64,000 bases of DNA from Cyanophora paradoxa CCMP329 (Eukaryota > Plantae > Glaucophyta). Positions 10,314-62,154 of this stretch are shown in pieces. The notes under the pieces were generated by a model. It was not told where the DNA came from, searched no databases, and saw nothing but the letters and a program-made list of their open reading frames with translations. The position numbers were made by a program, and so were the translations under genes. Location: positions 124,001 through 188,000 of the forward strand of contig QPMI01000545.1 of NCBI GenBank assembly GCA_004431415.1, given 5' to 3'. How positions within the stretch are numbered: the first letter of the stretch is position 1; the number at the start of each line of letters is the position of its first letter.

Positions 10314-12004
10314 TCAGTGCTTGTGTTTGTGCTTGTGGTCGTGGCCGTCGGCCTGGAAAGGAATTCAGCGCGGGGCGGGCGCGGCGCGTGGGAGGGACGG
10401 GTGGGGAGGCGCACGTGCTCCCCCTCCCCGTCCTCCGTGTTGTACTTGATCTGAGAAGGCGGGAGAGACTGAGCGGCGGGGCGCTAAGACGAGCGCCGGG
10501 CGGACAGCGCACCGAGTCGAGGGCGGCCTTCGTCTCGTCCTCGTACCGGCGGATGTCGTCGATCGTCATTCCGAACCTGGGCAAGCGGGCGGGCGGGCCG
10601 TGAGCCGCGCGCGCATCGGGCCGGCCGCGCGGCGCGCACCACTCGTCGATCCAGCAGACCGTTTTCCTGTTGTACTTGAAGAAGATGTCGCGCAGCGCCT
10701 GCGGCGTAGGGAAAGACGATAGGGGTGCGGCGTCAGCGGCGCGGGAGGAGGTCGCGCGGCACGCGAGGGTCAGGGGAGGCGCGTTCAGCCCTAATAACCG
10801 TAGTATATTTGTGCGATCAAGGGATTTCATAAGTTCTAGAGCTTGGATATGGTTGTAATCATCGGGCGGTGGTCCCCGAAGAGAATTGACGAGCAGCTAG
10901 GCTGGCCCGCACCTTCTGCATGGTCTTCTCGACCTTGCCCTGGAAGCCGAACATCTTGAACTCGGTCGTGCAGACTTTGTAACAGCACATCATCGGCTGC
11001 CGCTTCTCCTGCGAGCGGGCGCGTCGGCTGGCGGCGGGCGGCGCGGGGCGGGCGGCCAGGCCGGCGGCACCTCCCACTTCTTCTCGGCGATCGGTAGGCG
11101 ACCGGTCTTCGCCGACCGGACCTTGGACGGGTCCTCCGCCTCCAGGTACTCGTGCTTCTCCACCTGCGGGCGGGAAACCTCGTCCCAGACAGGGAAGGAC
11201 CGGCGGCGTGGCGGGCGGACCGGGTCGTGCACGATGTCAACGAACTCGACCGTTCTTTCTTTGAGCGTGTCCTTGTCAAGGTTCAAAGCCTGATCCTCGA
11301 GTTAACGAACCGCAAGGGAGCGGCGCGATGTTAAAAAGAGGCACACGTTCTCGGTCTGCCCGTGGTCGGGCAGGTACATGCTCTCCACAACCATGTTGAA
11401 GCGGTTGCCGAGGAATGGACACTGCTCGAAACAGGAGCATCAGCGGTCAGGCTGCAGGGGAAGTCGTGGCGCTCCGCGCTGGGCGAACCTTGTAAACTGC
11501 AGAGACAGAGATCAGGCAAAAGCGTGAGCGGTGCACGCGCGAAGCATACCAGTCTTGCAGTAAGGGTAGGCGTTCCAGGCCTCTTCCTCGACACGCACAG
11601 ACTTGGGCAGAATGCCGCGGATCCAGGAAGGCAGTTTGCTGTGGGCCGTCGGTTCGGGCGGCGAGAGGCGCGCGCTGGCTCGCACCTTGCGATATGGAAT
11701 ATCTTCAACGTGTACTGCCCTTGTTCTTCGCCGCGCTGATAAGGCTCGTTCTTGACGACTTGAATGCCGTCGCCTTTGCCAGCCATCGACTCTTCCCTGC
11801 TAGACTTCGCGACCATATACAGCTGTGCGACATGATACTGTGCGAGAGGACAGTGAGAGGAAGTGCGGCGCGTCGCGGGCGGGCGTCGGGGGCGCGGACC
11901 TCAGGCACTTCCAACGGGAGCGGAACACGGCTGCAGCGGCGACGACACTTAGCAGCGGCACATTAGAGAAGACTCGCGAGGACGCACTATTCCGTGATTA
12001 GCAT
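10314..12004 (-). CDS. PITP: Phosphatidylinositol transfer protein (class I PITP, START-like); multi-exon
   Basis: MLITEYRVPLP..AQLYMVAK..VKNEPY..GQYTLKIFH..KLPSW..EEAWNAYPYCKT..TGRLP..MCCYKVC..CWIDEWFGMTIDDIRRYE are canonical PITP motifs; ends DGHDHKHKHKH*. Confidence 0.95.
10782..10868 (-). ncRNA. Intronic ~88-nt element, copy 1 (candidate box C/D snoRNA-like RNA or snoRNA-derived repeat), in a PITP intron
   Basis: Differs from the copy at 40352 by 6 substitutions plus a 2-nt indel; sense to host; cCGATGA..ATGA..TTGATCG..CTGA box-like motifs. Confidence 0.55.
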
Positions 12005-37495: not shown

Positions 37496-37794
37496 CATGC
37501 CGGCGCCCAGCACTTCAGCTGAGGGTCTGTACGTGTGCCGCAGTGCTTTAATTTCTAGCTATTTGATCGACTCGGCCGCGGCGATGTCGCCGCGCCGCCA
37601 GCAGCGGGCGCATGCTTGTGCTACGCATGCTTGCAATTGGCCTTCGCGCAGGGCGATCGCGATCGGTTCGAATCCGCGCGGGGCGGTATCTCGTTAGGAT
37701 CTCGCGGGGCAGCTTCAAGCTCGAGCTCGTACGCGCGGCCCGCTCTCAGCAGCCGATCTCGTTCGCGTGTCAGCTATCAGCTAGCTGCCGCAGA

Positions 37795-40700
37795 ATGGCG
37801 GGCGCTGACAGCTTGGCGTTCGCGCTCGGCGTGGCCGCCGGGTCTTCCACGTCGGTCTCGATTCGCTCGATCATCGCCCAAACGACCGCTCTCGCGCACG
37901 TGAGGCCCTCTGGCGAGTGTTCCAGCCGGCGAGCGGAGGCCGCGAGACTGCGGAGCACGCACGAGTTCCTCGGCCAGCGGAGCTTCGGCAGCACGCATGT
38001 GCTCGCCAATATCGACCGGCTGCAGCGCTTCGCCCGCCGCGGAGGACGGGCGCGTGCGGGGCACGCAACGATCGAGGCGAAAGCGATCGACCCCCCGAAG
38101 CGTGCGCGCCGATCCTGGCCCCTGCTTATGAACCTTTTAGCCTTTAACTACATTCCGGGCCCGCTTTCGTTTCCCTGCGCAGCTACTTCAGTTGAGATCG
38201 ATATCGGGGACGGGAAGATTGTGACGATCGAGACTGGGATGTTGGCGCGACAGGCCGACGGCTCGGCCGTGCTGCGCTGCGGGAACTGCGTCCTGCTCGC
38301 GACCGTCTGCGCTGCCGTCAAACACAAGGAGGGCGCCGACTTCCTTCCCCTTTCCGTCGACTACGTGGAGCGCGTGCGTCCTGCGTCCCCCCGTCCCTTT
38401 TCTTTCCTTCCTTATGCTAGCGTCTTTCTTGAGCAGTACAGCGCTGCGGGTCGCTTCCCCGGTGGTTTCCTCAAGCGCGAGTCGAAGATGTCGGACAACG
38501 AGGTGCTCATCAGTCGCATCGTCGACCGTGCTGTCCGGCCGCTCTTCCCGGACGATTTCCACGCGGAGACACAGGTTTGCGCGCCGCTCGCGGGGCCCCT
38601 TCGGCCCGCGCGGTCGAGATTCCGAGATTTGATCCGCAGATCCTCGTCACGCTCGTTTCTGCGGACTCGGCGATCGCGCCGGACGCGCTCGCGGGCCTCG
38701 CTGCGTCGGCGGCGCTCGCAGTTTCCGACGTTCCGTTCCACGTGCGGCCCGCCCTGCCCGCCCGCGCCGTCTCCGCTTCGTCCCGTCGTCGAGCTCGGTC
38801 GCGCGGCAGGGCCCGTTCTCGGAGGTGCGCGTGGCGCGAGTGGACGGCAAGCTCGTGATCAACCCGTTCGTGGACGAGGTCCGTCCCTTCTTCCTCCGCC
38901 TTCCCCGCCCCGGGACGCTGCGTTGTGGGCCGAGCTCGTCCCGCGCCGCAGATCCCGCGCGCCGACATCGACATGATCGTCTCGGGCTCCCTCGATTCGA
39001 TCAACATGGTGGAGGGCGAGATGAACGAGGCGCGCGCGGCCGCGCGGCCGTCCCCGCTGCTTCTTCCCTTTTAAAACTTCTTCTCCTCCGCAGGTGTCGA
39101 AGGAGGAGATGCTGGAGGCGATCCTCTTCGCGCACGAGGCGATCAAGGCGCAGTGCCGGGCCGTCGCGGAGCTGGCGGAGAAGGCCGGCAAGGCCAAGCG
39201 CGAGTACTGCCACGAGGACCCCTTCGACGAGGAGATGTGGGTGCGCCGCAGAGAGATCGATCCCGGAGAGCCGCCGCTCGCCCTCGCCCGCTCTTGGCTG
39301 AGACTTCGTTCGCAGACGCGCGTCGTGGCGGACCTGTCGGGCCCCATGCGCGAGATCGCGACGTGCGGCCCCGCCCCGCCTCGCGCCCCGCCCCGCCCCG
39401 CGCCCCACCGGCCCCTCAACCGGACGCAGGGCGGGCCTGCCGAAGCTGGATCGCCAGGCGCGCTACGACGCGCTGTACCACAGCTGGGTCGAAGCGTGCG
39501 CCCGGGCCGCGCCCCGGGGCCGCCTCCTCGGCGGCTCCTGAGCGCGGGCGGGCCGGGCCGCGCGGCCGCGCAGGAACATACCGGACGAGGAGGTCTACGA
39601 GCACGAGGAGGTGCGCCGGCGCCGCTCCCCGCGCGCCCGCCGGCGCCCGAGCCGACGCCGACGCCGGTGCGCGCGGGGCAGCTGCACTTCAAGCAGTACT
39701 TCAACAAGCTGAAGAAGCGGATCACGCGGCGCCTCGTGCTGGACGAGGGAGTCCGCCTCGACGGCCGCAAGCTCGACGAGGTCGGCTCGGCTCGGCCCGG
39801 CCGCGGAGGGGGCCGCCCAAGCTAAAAGAGGGGCGCTCGGGCGCAGGTGCGGGACGTGTGGTGCGCGGTGGACTACCTGCCCTCGCCGCACGGCTCGGCG
39901 GTCTTCACGCGCGGAGAGACGCAAGCCCTCGCCACCGTCACCCTCGGCAACAAGCAGGACGAGCAGATGGCGCGCCCGCCCCGCCCCGCCCCGCCCCGCC
40001 CCGGCCCCGCCCGAGCCCCGCCCCGCCCAGATCGACGGGGTGATGCTGGTCGGCTCCGCCAAGTTCCTCCTCCACTACAACTTCCCGGGCTTCTCCACCG
40101 GCGAGGTCCGCCCCGTCCCATCCCGACCCCGAGCCTCTGGCGCCGGCCGGCCCGGCTCGGCTGAGGCCGGGGGCGGGCCTTTGTGCGCAGGTGAAGCCGA
40201 ACCGGGCGCCGGGGCGGCGGGAGGTGGGCCACGGCAACCTCGCCCAGCGCGCCCTCAAGAAGGTGGTACCCAGCGAGGAGGAGTGCCCGTACACCATCCG
40301 GTGCCCCCCCGCCCCGCCCCGCCGCCCGCCCCTGGGCTTTGACTCGAGTCGCGCCCGATGATTACAAACATATCCAAGCTCTAGAACCTCTGAGATCCCG
40401 TGATCGCACAAATATATACTACGGTTATTAGGGCTCAACGACGACCCTCACCCCCATCGCCCCCCCCACGCCCGCCCGCCCTCCCGCCCCCGCCGACCCC
40501 CCCTATCAACGGCAGAGTGGTCTCGGACGTGCTTGAGTCGAACGGGTCCTCGTCGATGGCATCCGTCTGCGCCGGCTCGCTCGCCATGCTCGACGCCGGC
40601 GTGCCCCTCAAGCGCCAGGCCCGCCCCGCCCACCCCCGCCCCGCCCCTCGCGCGCCCCGCCTTCTGACCCCGCCCTCCAGTGCGCCGGCATCGCGATGGG

Positions 40701-42471
40701 CCTGATCAGCGAGGGCGCCTCGGAGTCGCCCACGGGCAAGCCCCGCTTCGCGGTGCGCCGGCCCCGCTCACCCCTCCCCCCACCCCCACACCCTCCCGTC
40801 TCACCCCCGCCCCCCGCAGGTGCTGACGGACCTGCTGGGCGACGAGGACGCCCTCGGCGACATGGACTTCAAGGCGCCCGCCCGCCCGCCCGCCCGCCCG
40901 CCCGCCCGCCCCCGGCCTCCGCTCTGCCCTGCCCTGCTCCTAGCTCCAAGAGCTTCTGCGCCGGCTCGCTCACGCGGGGGGCCGGGGCGCAGATCGCGGG
41001 GACGGAGAAGGGCATCACCGCGTGCCAGATGGACATCAAGGTCCGTCCGTCCGTACGGGCGGCCTTGCCGGGTCGCTGAGGCCGAGGGGCGGCCCCGCCC
41101 CGCCCCGCGCGCGCGCAGGTCGAGGGCCTTAGCCGGGAGATCCTCCAGACCGCCATCGACCAGGCCGAGCGCGGCCGGTGCTTGTTTCGCTTTGCTTCGT
41201 CTCGCCACGCCTCGCGCTCCGCCTCGCCGACCGAGCCCGGGCGCCCAGGGGGGAGATCCTGCGGATCATGGACGGGACGTGCGCGGCGCCGCGGGCGGCG
41301 ATGAAGCCCCACGTGCCCCGCATCGTCCGCGTCAACATCCCAAGGCCCGCCAGCCCGCCCGCCCGCCCGCCCGGGCCCGACCCGTCGCTCGCTCCGGGTC
41401 TGACGAGTGCGCTGGGGCGCGCGCGCGTGCGCAGGGAGTTCGTGGGCCAGATCATCGGCCCCGGGGGCAAGAACATCCAGGGGCTGCAGCGGGAGACGGG
41501 GACGACGATCGACATCGAGGACCGGGGCGAGGGGGAGGACGCCGTCGTGGAGATCAGCGGGGGCGAGGAGGAGGGCACGCGCCGGGCCGTCGCCGCCATC
41601 CGCGGGGCCACCGTCGTGCCCGAGGTCGGCACCGTCTACGAGGGGTGCGCCCTCCCCCGCCCCCTTTCTTTCCTCCTTCCTTCTGAGCTCTCCCTGCGAA
41701 TCGAAGGCCCGTGAAGACCATCACGGCCTTTGGCGCCTTCGTCGAGTTCCTCCCCGGGAAGTGCGCAGATCGAGTCCCAGATCCCACGTCGAAATTCGGA
41801 TTCTGAGGGCCTGCTGCAGGGACGGGCTGCTGCACATCTCGGAGGTGGCGTGGGAGCGCCTCCCCGACCTCGAGGGCGTCCTGGCCGAGGGCGACGTCAT
41901 CCAGGTCAAGGTGCCCGCGGCGGGCCGGGGCCGGGGCCGGGGTCGCCCCTGGGCTCTTGTTTGTTCGAGTCGCGCCCGATGATTACAAACATATCCAAGC
42001 TCTAGAACCTCTGAGATCCCGTGATCGCACAAATATATACTACGGTTATGAGGGCTCAACGACGACCCGCCTCCTACCGCCCGCCCCTCCCCGCCTCCCC
42101 CCCGCGCCCCGGTCATGACGGGCTGGCGCGGCCGCGCCGCGCAGCTGATCGGAGTGGACGAGCGGACGGGCAAGTTCAAGCTCTCGCGCAAGGTCCTCCT
42201 GGAGAAGCCGGCGGCGCCCGAGCCGGCCGCCCCGCGCTCCACCGGCGCCGCCGACGACGCCGCCGCCCTCGACATGTCGGTGCGCCCGGCCCGCCCGGGC
42301 TCCTTCCCCCCCTCTGTGGTTCGGGCCCGACCTTGGGCAGATATTCGGCGAGGAGATCGTGCCGCTGGGCGGCGGCGACCGGGGCGACCGCGGCGACCGG
42401 GAGCGCCGCGGCGGCGGGGTGGCCGCGGCGGCCGCGGCGGCCGCGGCGGGCGGCGCCCCGCGCGGGACTAG
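37795..42471 (+). CDS. PNP: Polyribonucleotide nucleotidyltransferase (PNPase) with N-terminal plastid-type transit peptide; about 24 introns
   Basis: [87 protein letters not shown] (IIGPGGKNI)..S1 ([18 protein letters not shown]); RGG-rich tail. Confidence 0.97.
40352..40440 (+). ncRNA. Intronic ~88-nt element, copy 2, in a PNPase intron
   Basis: cgcccgatgattacaaacatatccaagctctagaacctctgagatcccgtgatcgcacaaatatatactacggttattagggctcaacg. Confidence 0.55.
41973..42061 (+). ncRNA. Intronic ~88-nt element, copy 3, in another PNPase intron
   Basis: One substitution relative to copy 2; shared flanks tcgagtcg and acgaccc. Confidence 0.55.
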
Positions 42472-59607: not shown

Positions 59608-62154
59608 TCAACACTTTTGATCCGTCTGAAAAATTCGCTGAGTTTGCCGGTGGGCCAGCGATACTTGTATTCCGTGATTGGCGAATTCAGAAGCTACTTC
59701 ATCTCGGACTGTAGCTGCGAGAGATGTAATATATTAATTGAAGTACGAATAAGCGCAAGCTGAACTGGATGTCGACCGAAAACTAAACACTCACCATCGT
59801 CAGAGGCGAGAAGGCTGCAGATCTCGCTCCAGACCGGCTCAAAAACAACACCCTTGTGGTCCTTGTTTAGAGCTTGCGCAAGGTGATCTTTGCGCCGAAC
59901 TCGCAAAGATGCGCCTAGGTAATAGGTGGAGCCAACCAATGCAAAAAGTGCGAAAAGTTCCATCAGAACGAGCCAAGTAAGATTAGCGGCTGTCACGTAT
60001 GTCTCGTTCACAATAAGCGTTTCTTCTATGATAGGAACGCCATTAGCTGTGCAACCGGGAGGCCTGACAGGCCAGTTAGGCGCGGTTTATACATGTACAT
60101 TATACATGGTTTTTATCCACGGCATGTACACGTACTCTTTGAGGGATTGCTCGATGTTGTACTTGTGTCGAGAGTCAGCGATCATCCACGCCGCCAAGAA
60201 ACCGAGATATACACTTATCGTGACAGCTGATTGCTGCGTGCGTATTGTTTGCGAGACATATCATGATAAAGCATCGAGATTCGAGAGTGACTTGCAAGCA
60301 CTCGCGTTTACGTGCCTTGACTCTGATCGCTTTGAACTCTCGTGATTTTCTGTTCGTCCAAGCGTGTTTCCAATCTCCAAGCAAGTTCCTCCGGAACTTC
60401 GCGTCCTTTCCATCTGTCAATCTGCTCAATGGCGCATTTCGTCATGATCAGTGGTCAGTTGGGGAGATTTTTGCGCACGATCACAATATTCAAACTAATA
60501 ATAATTCAGTTTGTGAATTCGCACCGATACTCGTAACATCGGACGAGAAAGAGACCAATCGAAATAGCAATTGTGACAATGCTTTTACCCACGTCTTTGT
60601 GGTCTATTAGCGTAAGACTCGCTAGACTCGTCGCAGAAAGTACTTGGTCTGATGTATTCTGCCAAGGCGCACGAGAGGTGTATGCGCCGAGATCGACATG
60701 TACGTCGCAAACTCCCTCTGTCGCTTCTTTGGACACGGTCGCGGGAATCCATTTACCATTTGCTCCTTGCGAGTATACATATGAGATCTAGATCGATATA
60801 GTGTTCAAAAACAGATCACCGTCACTGTTCTTGCGGTAGTTGTTTTGGCGAATGCTGTTGTATTCCCGATCTCTTGGCAGGAGAACTAAATGTATGCCTG
60901 CGTCCGCCAGCTCTTTTTCGACAGCCTTGCTGGTTTCCTCAGAGTCAACAAGAAGATCCGCGATCTCCATTATATAATATCGAGTTACAAGCCGTTCGGC
61001 TTCGCGCTGCTTCTGAGAGCGCTCGCTTGAGGTCGTCTTTGTATCAAAGGGCACGAATCGCGATCGGATGCAGCGTTCACTTTGCCAAATTGCAAAAATC
61101 AAGGCAAAAAGGCCGAATTGATCAACAAACTGTGAGCGTCGAGCATGCACGTGCACAAGGTGAGCTTAATTATAATAATAAGCACCACAGTGCAGAAGAT
61201 TGCGAACCGCAAGAAACAGAAGAGTCTTTGTCGCGTTGTTGTATTTGTCTTGTTCATCAGCAGGGTTTGAGTCCGGGTTGCCCTAGGTGCGCGCCGGGCT
61301 CAGGCTTAAGACTCTGAGACTGACGCACGCAGAAGGTTAAAGATTTGAAGGGGGTGCCCTTACCCACTGACTCGGACTTGGCGGTACCTGGAATTCCCAA
61401 GCCGCATCCATGAGCAAAAAAAACGTACCCAGCACAACAGCGATAAGAAACCGCCTGAAGTACTTGCGCATACTTGTCTTTTGAGTAAGAGCCGCAAGGT
61501 GAGAGCCACCATATGCATGCGATCCTGTGACCACTTTCTTACGCTTGACATCTTCCGAAGAAAACTGGTCCATGAGCACGTTGCGGATGCCTAGATACGC
61601 GAGCGCAATCACAATGTAGACCATGCTTGGATAGGCAGCTGCACACGCGCGCGCATGCGCATTCATCAGAAAGCCCGGCGCCGGCCACGAATCGGCCTCG
61701 AAGCCCGGCATGAAAATATGTAGCACCTGAATAACTGATGAACGTTAAGCTTGCCGTACAGGTACTTTTAAGCAGCTCATCAAGAAACTCAACACGAAAG
61801 CGACAATTGAAATAGGCGTCGACATTAAACTCCAGATCTCCCACATGCTCTGCTGCTGGATCGTACCCATCGGCATCCTTGGCACCGCCTTCGACCGCGC
61901 TCGCATTCGAAACTAGCGCTGTAGATGTAGCACCGGTACTGGTACCAAAAACGCCGGCGTCGACCGCAGGCTCTACATCGCCATGGAAGCCGGCGCCTTC
62001 ACCTGCACACGCACCGTGGTATATATGCGTGTGCTCTGTAACGGCTGCAACCGCATGCGCACTGGGGGCGCGCACCTTTCGCACTGACATGTTCGATGTC
62101 ATGTACTTTAGCATTGATGATTTCGACAGAAATGTCTTCAGTTTGCGTGGCCAT
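59608..62154 (-). CDS. Hypothetical multi-pass membrane protein with two homologous modules; low GC, multi-exon
   Basis: MATQTEDISVE..; hydrophobic segments (SMVYIVIALAYLGIR, FLIAVVLGTFFLLM, LVLMELFALFALVG); GT..AG introns; TATA-like tttatataag ~60 nt upstream. Some junctions unresolved. Confidence 0.65.

Follow-up and report, generated by a model that had tools for sequence, protein, structure and literature searches.

The 64-kb window of Cyanophora paradoxa DNA analyzed here (by window we mean this whole stretch) contains a short element in three near-identical copies, which we interpret as an intron-encoded box C/D snoRNA gene represented by three paralogues, one per intron, with a predicted guide function on 18S rRNA. 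We place the probability of this reading, which is drawn from the DNA sequence, at roughly three in four. An earlier sequence-only reading had offered two explanations, either a small RNA gene living in introns or a MITE-like element. The first of these is supported by the presence and spacing of box C/D parts, together with two antisense blocks that are complementary to adjacent 18S sequence.

Three copies of the element reside in the introns of two unrelated genes

All three copies were recovered where the sequence-only reading had placed them, at 10782–10868 on the minus strand and at 40352–40440 and 41973–42061 on the plus strand, and searches of both strands of the window with nhmmer and blastn-short revealed none further. 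Alignment reproduced the six substitutions and the one 2-nt indel reported between copies 1 and 2, whose flanks are unrelated, as well as the single nucleotide by which copies 2 and 3 differ within the conserved block. Over 104 nt (40344–40447 versus 41965–42068), the sequences of copies 2 and 3 agree at 99% of positions, which implies that they either were copied recently or have undergone gene conversion.

The proposed unit length of ~88 nt is correct for the shared block and too long for the RNA proper, which is predicted to be 80 to 82 nt. The ~88-nt block common to copies 1 and 2 consists of the predicted RNA with 1 additional nucleotide on its 5′ side and 6 on its 3′ side. Copies 2 and 3 have a longer block in common, which includes another 9 nt on the 5′ side and 13 nt on the 3′ side of the predicted mature RNA; upstream of this block, they can still be aligned with gaps.

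Every copy is, as had been noted, sense to its host gene and intronic, and each of the three introns is of the GT..AG type. The gene that hosts copy 1 was recognized from the open reading frames flanking the intron, which match Pfam IP_trans positions 177 to 212 upstream and 209 to 230 downstream, and the exons on either side of copies 2 and 3 were confirmed by tblastn with bacterial PNPases. The three element-bearing introns are 214 to 234 nt long, versus ~41 to 73 nt for most other PNPase introns. Within them, the 3′ end of the predicted RNA lies 81 to 89 nt upstream of the 3′ splice site, and the homology between copies 1 and 2 ends 44 to 51 nt from the 5′ splice site and 75 to 83 nt from the 3′ splice site. 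The description of the element as an AT-richer island also holds, with 41 to 45% GC in the element versus 64 to 83% in the intron flanks. The public C. paradoxa PNPase gene model ends inside the predicted snoRNA, and recognizing such introns could yield better gene models.

Two further properties that had been claimed, the lack of a target-site duplication and of poly(A), were likewise found for all three copies; the longest word common to the flanks is 3 to 4 nt. A 19-mer of the element had no matches in viral contigs. Its single match in prokaryotic genomes (L118) has unrelated flanks and was set aside as a chance occurrence.

Table 1. Positions of the predicted RNAs, their parts, and their host introns in the window
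Feature	Position	Strand	Description
Host intron, copy 1	10699..10912	-	214 nt, GT..AG, phase 0; phosphatidylinositol transfer protein (PITP) gene
Host intron, copy 2	40301..40515	+	215 nt; PNPase gene, between residues 430 and 431 of bacterial PNPase P0013
Host intron, copy 3	41911..42144	+	234 nt; PNPase gene, S1-domain region
Host gene PNPase (polynucleotide phosphorylase)	37795..42201	+	Span of the tblastn match with bacterial PNPases
Copy 1, predicted RNA proper	10788..10867	-	80 nt; GCCC, box C AUGAUUA, 10-nt D′ block, D′ AUGA, C′ UGAUCG, 12-nt D guide, D-like AUUA, GGGC
Copy 2, predicted RNA proper	40353..40434	+	82 nt; D-like box AUUA
Copy 3, predicted RNA proper	41974..42055	+	82 nt; D box AUGA, allowing a standard tandem G·A k-turn core
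Box C, copy 2	40358..40364	+	AUGAUUA; canonical RUGAUGA
D′ antisense block, copy 2	40377..40386	+	10 nt, complementary to 18S nt 155–164 (L038 numbering), 3 nt upstream of D′
D′/C′, copy 2	40390..40406	+	D′ CUGA 40390–40393, 7-nt linker, C′ UGAUCG 40401–40406
D guide, copy 2	40417..40428	+	12 nt Watson–Crick to 18S nt 142–153 (L038 numbering)

The conserved block carries the parts of a box C/D snoRNA

The ends of the predicted RNA form a 4-bp terminal stem (GCCC/GGGC) in all copies, with its 5′ strand 1 nt before box C and its 3′ strand immediately following box D. This placement of boxes C and D at the terminal stem corresponds to the geometry of a k-turn. Box C reads AUGAUUA in 3/3 copies, with one deviation from the RUGAUGA consensus (G6 to U), and the same variant is found in the Rfam consensus of snoU36a and ceN56. 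Internally, box D′ is CUGA in copies 2 and 3 and AUGA in copy 1, such that its UGA is invariant, as is the UGAUCG of box C′ located 7 nt downstream. In copy 2, the last two nucleotides of the D guide overlap the D-like box at 40427–40430.

When the two strands of the window were scanned under relaxed settings for a box C, a terminal stem, and a box D, the three element loci alone matched, and each of the three carries both rRNA matches beside D and D′. An alternative D box was considered 4 nt downstream, where copy 1 has CUGA and copies 2 and 3 have CUCA. It was rejected, as this register has no flush terminal stem and would place the +5 nucleotide in a G·U wobble.

No Rfam family reached its gathering score anywhere in the window. 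Below threshold, copy 3 aligns end to end with ceN56 (E = 0.12, 18.3 bits, cut-off 60) and with snoU36a (E = 5.9), both of which are C/D families with UGAUUA and AUGA boxes, as in copy 3. For copy 1, Rfam returned nothing at a cut-off as loose as E ≤ 10.

The differences between copies 1 and 2 that fall inside the RNA, five substitutions and one indel, all lie outside the stems, box C, the antisense blocks, and the GA cores. The rough P value for this placement is 0.005, which becomes ~0.17 if the constrained sites are defined more strictly.

The D box of two copies departs from the k-turn consensus

In copy 3, whose D box is AUGA, both G·A pairs of the k-turn are possible. The first nucleotide of the D box, A1, can pair with U6 of box C, and this interaction would replace the usual G-C pair. 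Copies 1 and 2 have the D box AUUA, and the second k-turn pair would be A·U. We know of no C/D snoRNA for which function with a D box of this sequence has been demonstrated. If copies 1 and 2 are active, they would constitute a natural test of the deviation that is tolerated by a C/D k-turn. Changing G to U at position 2n, which is the position of the D box G, prevents the model k-turn Kt-7 from folding with ions (PMC5061560), whereas natural k-turns with U at 2n, such as Kt-23 of T. thermophilus, do fold (PMC5061560).

The deviation could be taken to mean that the snoRNA family is in decay, such that a stable snoRNP is assembled on copy 3 alone while the other two copies persist as inactive relics, or that all three descend from a guide that has lost its function. 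The box D guanosine that is U in copies 1 and 2 contributes one of the two sheared G·A pairs of the k-turn, and when copies 1 and 3 were compared, the weak Rfam C/D matches were confined to copy 3. We consider decay unlikely, though, because copies 1 and 2, which are the most divergent, retain the antisense blocks, box C, the C′/D′ cores, and the terminal stem. Conservation of this kind is not expected in unconstrained intron sequence. Moreover, since this most divergent pair has U in both members, parsimony indicates that U is probably the ancestral state of the D box and that the G in copy 3 is a recent change. The folding of Kt-23 with U at 2n argues in the same direction.

Two antisense blocks match adjacent sequence in the 5′ domain of 18S rRNA

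When joined with a 1-nt gap, the two antisense blocks correspond without mismatch to a stretch of eukaryotic 18S rRNA near nt 142 to 164. For this comparison, a composite pattern made of the reverse complement of the D guide, N{0,3}, and the reverse complement of the D′ block was used, and the 18S sequences were drawn from metagenome contigs. More than 117 of these contigs contain the pattern, with a gap of 1 nt every time, and the sequences that flank it vary from contig to contig, as expected if many eukaryotes are represented. Rfam placed all three of the matched loci submitted to it (L017, L019, and L038) at about nt 144 to 178 of eukaryotic SSU rRNA. The pattern had no matches in viral contigs. 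On 18S rRNA, one A is left unpaired between the helix formed by the D guide and that formed by the D′ block.

A single 10-mer match to rRNA is common, being found for 29% of shuffled sequences. Two separate 10-mers whose rRNA targets lie 10 to 30 nt apart are encountered in only 100 of 300,000 shuffles. Similarly, the gain on co-folding with rRNA is −14 to −17.5 kcal/mol versus −4.6 ± 2.5 kcal/mol for shuffles, a value reached by 0/500 of them. A thermodynamic scan with each block alone returned other rRNA sites of similar energy and thus does not discriminate among them. The assignment of the 18S target is therefore based on three properties of the matches: they are exact and uninterrupted, they adjoin one another on the rRNA, and they lie beside the boxes.

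Under the box-D +5 rule, 2′-O-methylation directed by the D guide would fall on the G in AACCG, a predicted target that we take, by our own count, to be about G149 in Arabidopsis numbering. The targets given by the rule for the two blocks are presumably, again by our count, the G four nucleotides into AACCGUAG and, in the UUCUAG stretch, the second U. With 18S sequence from the metagenome contigs, the D guide provides 12 nt of Watson–Crick antisense that directly adjoins box D and overlaps it by 2 nt, where a guide is expected to offer 10 nt or more no further than 2 nt from its box; the D′ block offers 10 nt but lies 3 nt from box D′. A gap of 2 nt from the box is given as the largest that is tolerated (PMC5464676). 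Because the 3-nt gap exceeds this usual tolerance, the D′ block more likely acts as an accessory pairing that clamps the substrate than as a guide, although it may direct a further methylation, in which case the modified nucleotide would be that second U.

The predicted targets are not among the mapped 2′-O-methyl sites of Arabidopsis 18S rRNA, where A162 is the only site between U123 and U213, nor among the mapped human sites, which in this stretch are Am159, Am166, Um172, and Cm174. Registers of the D′ block that would reach the equivalent of Arabidopsis A162 were examined and rejected, as none has a GA-containing box at the right distance.

A more elaborate role can be envisaged in which the RNA does not act, or does not act solely, as a +5-rule methylation guide, and its D and D′ arms together form a bipartite clamp on 21 contiguous nt of the 18S 5′ domain, built on a nonstandard k-turn with U at 2n (D box AUUA). 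Such a clamp would either flip out the single A for a modification enzyme, comparable to the action of snR4, snR45, and U13 on cytidines, or hold the stretch open during early 18S folding. The flipped-out A is, on our count, presumably the equivalent of human Am159. We regard this role as a long shot, even less probable than the decay of the family considered above.

Expression from the host transcript is proposed

We propose that the element has no promoter of its own and that its transcription would depend on that of the host gene, PITP or PNPase, whose pre-mRNA would contain it. The RNA would be released upon splicing of the intron and would then be trimmed by exonucleases to the 80 to 82 nt protected in the snoRNP. 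Production from the host transcript would explain why the element is sense to its host in every case, and the need for the guides to match AU-rich rRNA would explain the AT-rich island. The predicted RNA folds no more stably than shuffled sequences (z from +0.97 to −0.29), which is the behavior anticipated of a guide RNA and contrasts with the hairpin of a MITE.

Mobility provides a poorer account of the element

The MITE-like explanation is not supported. It would hold that the element is nonautonomous mobile DNA, either a MITE or an introner-like sequence, and that its snoRNA features are coincidental or belong to a captured passenger. The copies are indeed dispersed, since their two host genes are unrelated, lie 30 kb from each other, and are read from opposite strands. 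They sit in introns three to four times longer than most neighbors, and the near identity of copies 2 and 3 implies recent copying or conversion. However, the longest perfect terminal inverted repeat is 2 nt at the ends of the conserved block and 4 nt (GCCC/GGGC) at the ends of the RNA, there is no target-site duplication, and the fold is no more stable than that of shuffles. The homology between copies 1 and 2 stops before both splice sites, which the element, unlike an introner, therefore does not provide. In addition, the 64-kb window contains only three copies, and the exact, adjacent 18S complementarity beside the boxes would be left without explanation. Taken together, these findings make mobile DNA very improbable.

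Equally improbable is an origin as a snoRT-like retrogene, in which a mature snoRNA returned to introns by reverse transcription. The sequence common to copies 1 and 2 does nearly equal the predicted mature RNA, but poly(A) tails and target-site duplications are lacking. The similarity between copies 2 and 3, moreover, reaches beyond the mature ends, so that the unit copied in their case was genomic DNA or a gene-conversion tract rather than mature RNA.

Comparison with known systems

Introners, which are known from Micromonas and Aureococcus, and MITEs are reportedly repeats found in introns in the sense orientation. Introners are said to span nearly the whole intron, to carry or create splice sites, to have inverted repeats or target-site duplications, and to number in the hundreds to thousands. 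The element resembles introners in being repeated, intronic, and sense to its host gene, and differs in having none of the introner features that were tested.

The predicted snoRNA can also be compared with guides that act by means other than a single methylation duplex. In the acetylation guides snR4, snR45, and U13, two C/D antisense segments flank and loop out an 18S nucleotide (PMC5464676, Sharma et al. 2017), much as the two arms of the element bracket one 18S nucleotide. Those guides present a cytidine in helices 34 and 45 to Kre33/NAT10, whereas the element loops out an A in the 5′ domain and has a D guide that looks like a normal methylation guide. Assignment to the acetylation type was rejected because the bracketed base is not a cytidine and because the target CCG is located inside the D-guide duplex. 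Another parallel is the extra base-pairing of box C/D snoRNAs, where 4 to 11 bp, often contributed by an unused second guide region, form beside the methylation duplex and stimulate methylation (PMC3116282, van Nues et al. 2011). The 10-bp block of the element similarly abuts the 12-bp D-guide duplex with a gap of 1 nt. Unlike the yeast blocks, which are usually not beside D′ (PMC3116282), that of the element is 3 nt from a good D′ (CUGA), which is why a second methylation was entertained above.

In the vertebrate pattern, each intron encodes a single box C/D snoRNA, and different introns of the same host gene can carry paralogues. Multicopy families of intronic snoRNAs are also described, both for Chlamydomonas and for plants on land (Chen et al. 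2008, Genetics 179:21, as cited in PMC7671301). The element agrees with such intronic C/D snoRNAs in its predicted length of 80 to 82 nt, its C, D′, C′, and D-like boxes, its terminal stem, and its rRNA antisense blocks beside the boxes. It also shares with them the sense orientation in a host intron, the presence of several isoforms from gene duplication, and a 3′ end ~80 to 90 nt before the 3′ splice site. It departs from them in the AUUA D box of two copies and in matching no Rfam family. Unlike the tandem arrays of green algae and plants, its copies are single and dispersed over two host genes that are unrelated. Among the O. tauri snoRNA sequences, neither antisense 8-mer occurs in a box C/D snoRNA, and the one match is to an H/ACA snoRNA. 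Arabidopsis supplementary data gave no match either, a result of little weight given that the name SnoR18 itself does not appear in them. In the literature searched, we found no description of glaucophyte snoRNAs, and the element adds a concrete candidate guide RNA for this lineage.

The 18S stretch that the element is predicted to bind is a hot spot of methylation in human, where four sites are mapped; in Arabidopsis it has a single site (Am162). The nucleotides predicted for the element differ from these known sites, and this lineage may have a different set of 18S methylation sites. Human SNORD45A, SNORD45B, SNORD45C, and SNORD44, as well as Arabidopsis SnoR18, are C/D guides for the same short stretch of the 18S 5′ domain. 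Their mapped sites are not the predicted targets, and no sequence homology to the element was detected. Human SNORD45A is a double guide for two nearby sites, as the element may be.

Three sense-oriented copies in introns of two genes

The sequence-only reading had placed three copies of the element in the window, and reading the sequence at those positions confirms them. Alignment reproduces the differences it reported, namely six substitutions and a 2-nt indel between copies 1 and 2 and a 1-base difference in the core between copies 2 and 3, which are 99% identical across 104 nt. When flanks are included, the alignment reveals an invariant core common to all three copies. A fourth copy was not found on either strand of the 64-kb window by an nhmmer profile search and short-word blastn. 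The description of an AT-richer island also holds, with a GC content of 41-45% in the element versus 64-83% in the intron flanks.

Exon ORFs were searched individually and were never joined. The ORFs upstream and downstream of copy 1 match the Pfam profile IP_trans (phosphatidylinositol transfer protein, PITP) at profile positions 177-212 and 209-230, respectively, which identifies the intervening intron as the host of this copy. The PITP gene is unrelated to the PNPase gene, 30 kb away on the opposite strand. There, residues 394-430 and 431-464 of bacterial PNPase correspond to 40188-40298 and 40514-40615 around copy 2, and residues 654-685 and 684-703 correspond to 41818-41913 and 42142-42201 around copy 3 (all plus strand). 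Because the remaining PNPase gaps are mostly ~41-73 nt, the element-bearing introns are three to four times the usual size. All three have the sense orientation originally proposed, and the distance from a copy to its splice sites is 45-63 nt on the 5′ side and 81-89 nt on the 3′ side.

Features of the element and its host introns
Feature	Coordinates	Strand	Description
Host intron, copy 1	10912-10699	-	214 nt, GT..AG, PITP gene
Host intron, copy 2	40301-40515	+	215 nt, PNPase gene
Host intron, copy 3	41911-42144	+	234 nt, PNPase gene
Putative snoRNA proper, copy 1	10867-10788	-	stem to stem
Putative snoRNA proper, copy 2	40353-40434	+	stem to stem
Putative snoRNA proper, copy 3	41974-42055	+	stem to stem
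Copy 2, 5′ stem			GCCC
Copy 2, unpaired after 5′ stem			one G
Copy 2, box C			AUGAUUA
Copy 2, spacer from box C to D′ antisense block			12 nt
Copy 2, D′ antisense block			10 nt
Copy 2, gap from D′ antisense block to D′			3 nt
Copy 2, D′ box			CUGA
Copy 2, linker from D′ to C′			7 nt
Copy 2, C′ box			UGAUCG
Copy 2, spacer from C′ to D guide			10 nt
Copy 2, D guide			12 nt; 3′-most two bases shared with the start of the D-like box
Copy 2, D-like box			AUUA
Copy 2, 3′ stem			GGGC

The nearest protein is EukProt EP00741 Cyanophora paradoxa P018700, whose exon pieces are near-identical, which assigns the window to this glaucophyte or a very close relative of it. This public PNPase model (549 aa) misses the 5′ splice site at position 40301 (40188-40361) and stops at TGA 40359-40361, within box C of copy 2, so that it has neither the KH nor the S1 part, both of which are encoded downstream in the window to ~42201. 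After the Cyanophora protein, the best matches of the PNPase N-terminal ORF (37612-38976) are all Bacteroidota PNPases (52-62% identity across the matched third); no cyanobacterial or plant PNPase appears there. Word-based selection of candidates may have produced this pattern artificially; alternatively, the pattern may hint at the origin of the gene. Two more oversized gaps separate PNPase exon matches, one (40616-40819, 204 nt) that seems to contain a small additional exon flanked by C-rich introns on both sides and one (40874-40989, 116 nt) that contains a (GCCC)n microsatellite; neither gap yielded C/D-like architecture. Elsewhere, GC content drops to 49% at 60001-62000 (57-61% in neighbouring 2-kb bins, 70-80% in most of the window), a region with seven ORFs of 121-285 aa that lack a Pfam match.

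Box C/D anatomy and the unusual D box

We favour, at a probability of roughly 0.75, an intron-encoded box C/D snoRNA. A k-turn needs a stem flush with its boxes, and the terminal stem here is flush with both box C and the D-like box. Box C U6 is able to pair with box D A1 in place of the usual G-C, and the GA cores of the internal D′/C′ pair are kept in all three copies. A relaxed scan of both strands of the window (box C [AG]UGAU[GU]A, box D [CA]U[GU]A, flush 4-bp stem) returned these three loci only, and thus the architecture is no common accident in this sequence. Single-strand fold stability is no better than that of shuffles (z of +0.97, -0.20, and -0.29), which fits a guide RNA and not a hairpin-forming MITE. 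Within the RNA, copies 1 and 2 differ by five substitutions and one indel, all outside the stems, box C, antisense blocks, and GA cores. The probability of this pattern is roughly 0.005, but only ~0.17 if position 1 of D′ and of C′ is also treated as constrained. With three sequences, the pattern is no more than suggestive.

The main weak point of the snoRNA reading is the D box, which is AUGA with the standard tandem G·A core in copy 3 versus AUUA in copies 1 and 2. Parsimony would make AUUA the ancestral state. Ribosomal Kt-23 often has a U at k-turn position 2n and does fold (PMC5061560). We know of no C/D snoRNA that is proven to function with a U at this position. On a less likely reading, the family is in partial decay, with copy 3 alone active.

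A search of the window found no Rfam family at threshold. Copy 3 gives a weak end-to-end alignment with two Rfam C/D families having the same UGAUUA/AUGA boxes, and copy 1 gives no Rfam match. The 5′ 17 nt (CCC-AUGAUUACAAAC) and 3′ AUGAGGGCU of copy 3 (41973-42056) match the ends of the ceN56 consensus almost perfectly; ceN56 is a C. elegans C/D snoRNA family (RF01643; E=0.12 for copy 3), and the likeness probably reflects convergent boxes and stem.

Conservation between the divergent copies also extends to the 6 nt that follow the terminal stem on its 3′ side (UGAACG/UCAACG; 10782-10787, 40435-40440, and 42056-42061); in copy 1, these give rise to a canonical CUGA 4 nt past the D-like box. 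The flanks can form different short external stems, GGGGA/UCCCC in copy 1 versus GUCG/CGAC in the other two. These may be processing aids.

Complementarity to 18S rRNA

A metagenome collection was scanned with the reverse complements of both antisense blocks, separated by a free gap of 0-3 nt. The composite pattern was matched in more than 117 contigs, all of which have exactly 1 nt between the two blocks, and flanks vary from contig to contig around an invariant GGAUAACCGUAGUAAUUCUAGAGCUAAUAC, as expected for many different eukaryotes. In the three long loci checked against Rfam, the match always lies within eukaryotic SSU rRNA (~nt 144-178, depending on the locus). Against the full rRNA operon of one metagenome locus, L038, the D guide forms 12 contiguous Watson-Crick pairs (nt 142-153) and the D′ block forms 10 contiguous pairs (nt 155-164), with no comparable complementarity elsewhere in that operon.

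A single 10-mer rRNA match is weak evidence, since 29% of shuffles have one (2.2% for a 12-mer). Two separate 10-mers with targets 10-30 nt apart, box adjacency being no condition, occurred in 100 of 300,000 shuffles. In co-folding, simultaneous binding of both arms is possible and gains -14 to -17.5 kcal/mol, which none of 500 shuffles reached. A thermodynamic scan allowing wobbles and bulges did not single out the 18S site by either block alone, and the target call therefore rests on exact matches, adjacency, and position. The 18S sequences compared are those of metagenome eukaryotes, which stand in for that of the organism itself.

Proposed biogenesis and action

From what is established for intronic C/D snoRNAs, the RNA would be made from the host pre-mRNA, which would account for why every copy is sense; splicing would free the RNA, and trimming would then leave the ends that the snoRNP protects. 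The +5 rule predicts that the D guide directs methylation of the G in AACCG, which by our own count we take to be about G149 in Arabidopsis numbering, and that the D′ block would direct that of the second U of the UUCUAG stretch. These nucleotides are not among the mapped 18S sites of Arabidopsis (A162 is the sole site between U123 and U213) or human (A159, A166, U172, and C174 in this stretch).

Because the 3-nt gap between the D′ block and D′ exceeds the cited tolerance of 2 nt (PMC5464676), we consider supplementary base-pairing a likelier role for this block than that of a second guide. Pairing of this kind stimulates methylation, and the second guide region is a frequent site for it (PMC3116282). 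It is improbable that the RNA is a bipartite clamp, by which the one A separating the targets of the two arms would be looped out in the way of box C/D acetylation guides (PMC5464676).

Origin of the copies

Retroposition of a snoRNA is unlikely, given that an A-tail and direct repeats are absent and that the block common to copies 2 and 3 runs past the mature ends. The latter suggests that one PNPase intron received its copy from the other as DNA, by duplication or gene conversion. The sequence-only reading, which saw neither a target-site duplication nor poly(A), as we do, had left open a small RNA gene or a MITE-like element; C/D anatomy and the 18S match uphold the former, and a MITE or introner is unlikely because inverted repeats, target-site duplication, and hairpin are all absent and the homology of divergent copies stops well within the intron, so that the element does not bring splice sites.

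Comparison with known snoRNAs

SNORD44, SNORD45, and SnoR18 are known guides for the same short 18S stretch. That vertebrates, plants, and Chlamydomonas have multi-copy intronic snoRNAs is well known (work cited in PMC7671301). What sets the element apart from these is that it is spread one per intron over two genes, that its D box departs from the standard, and that the targets of its arms are adjacent in 18S rRNA.
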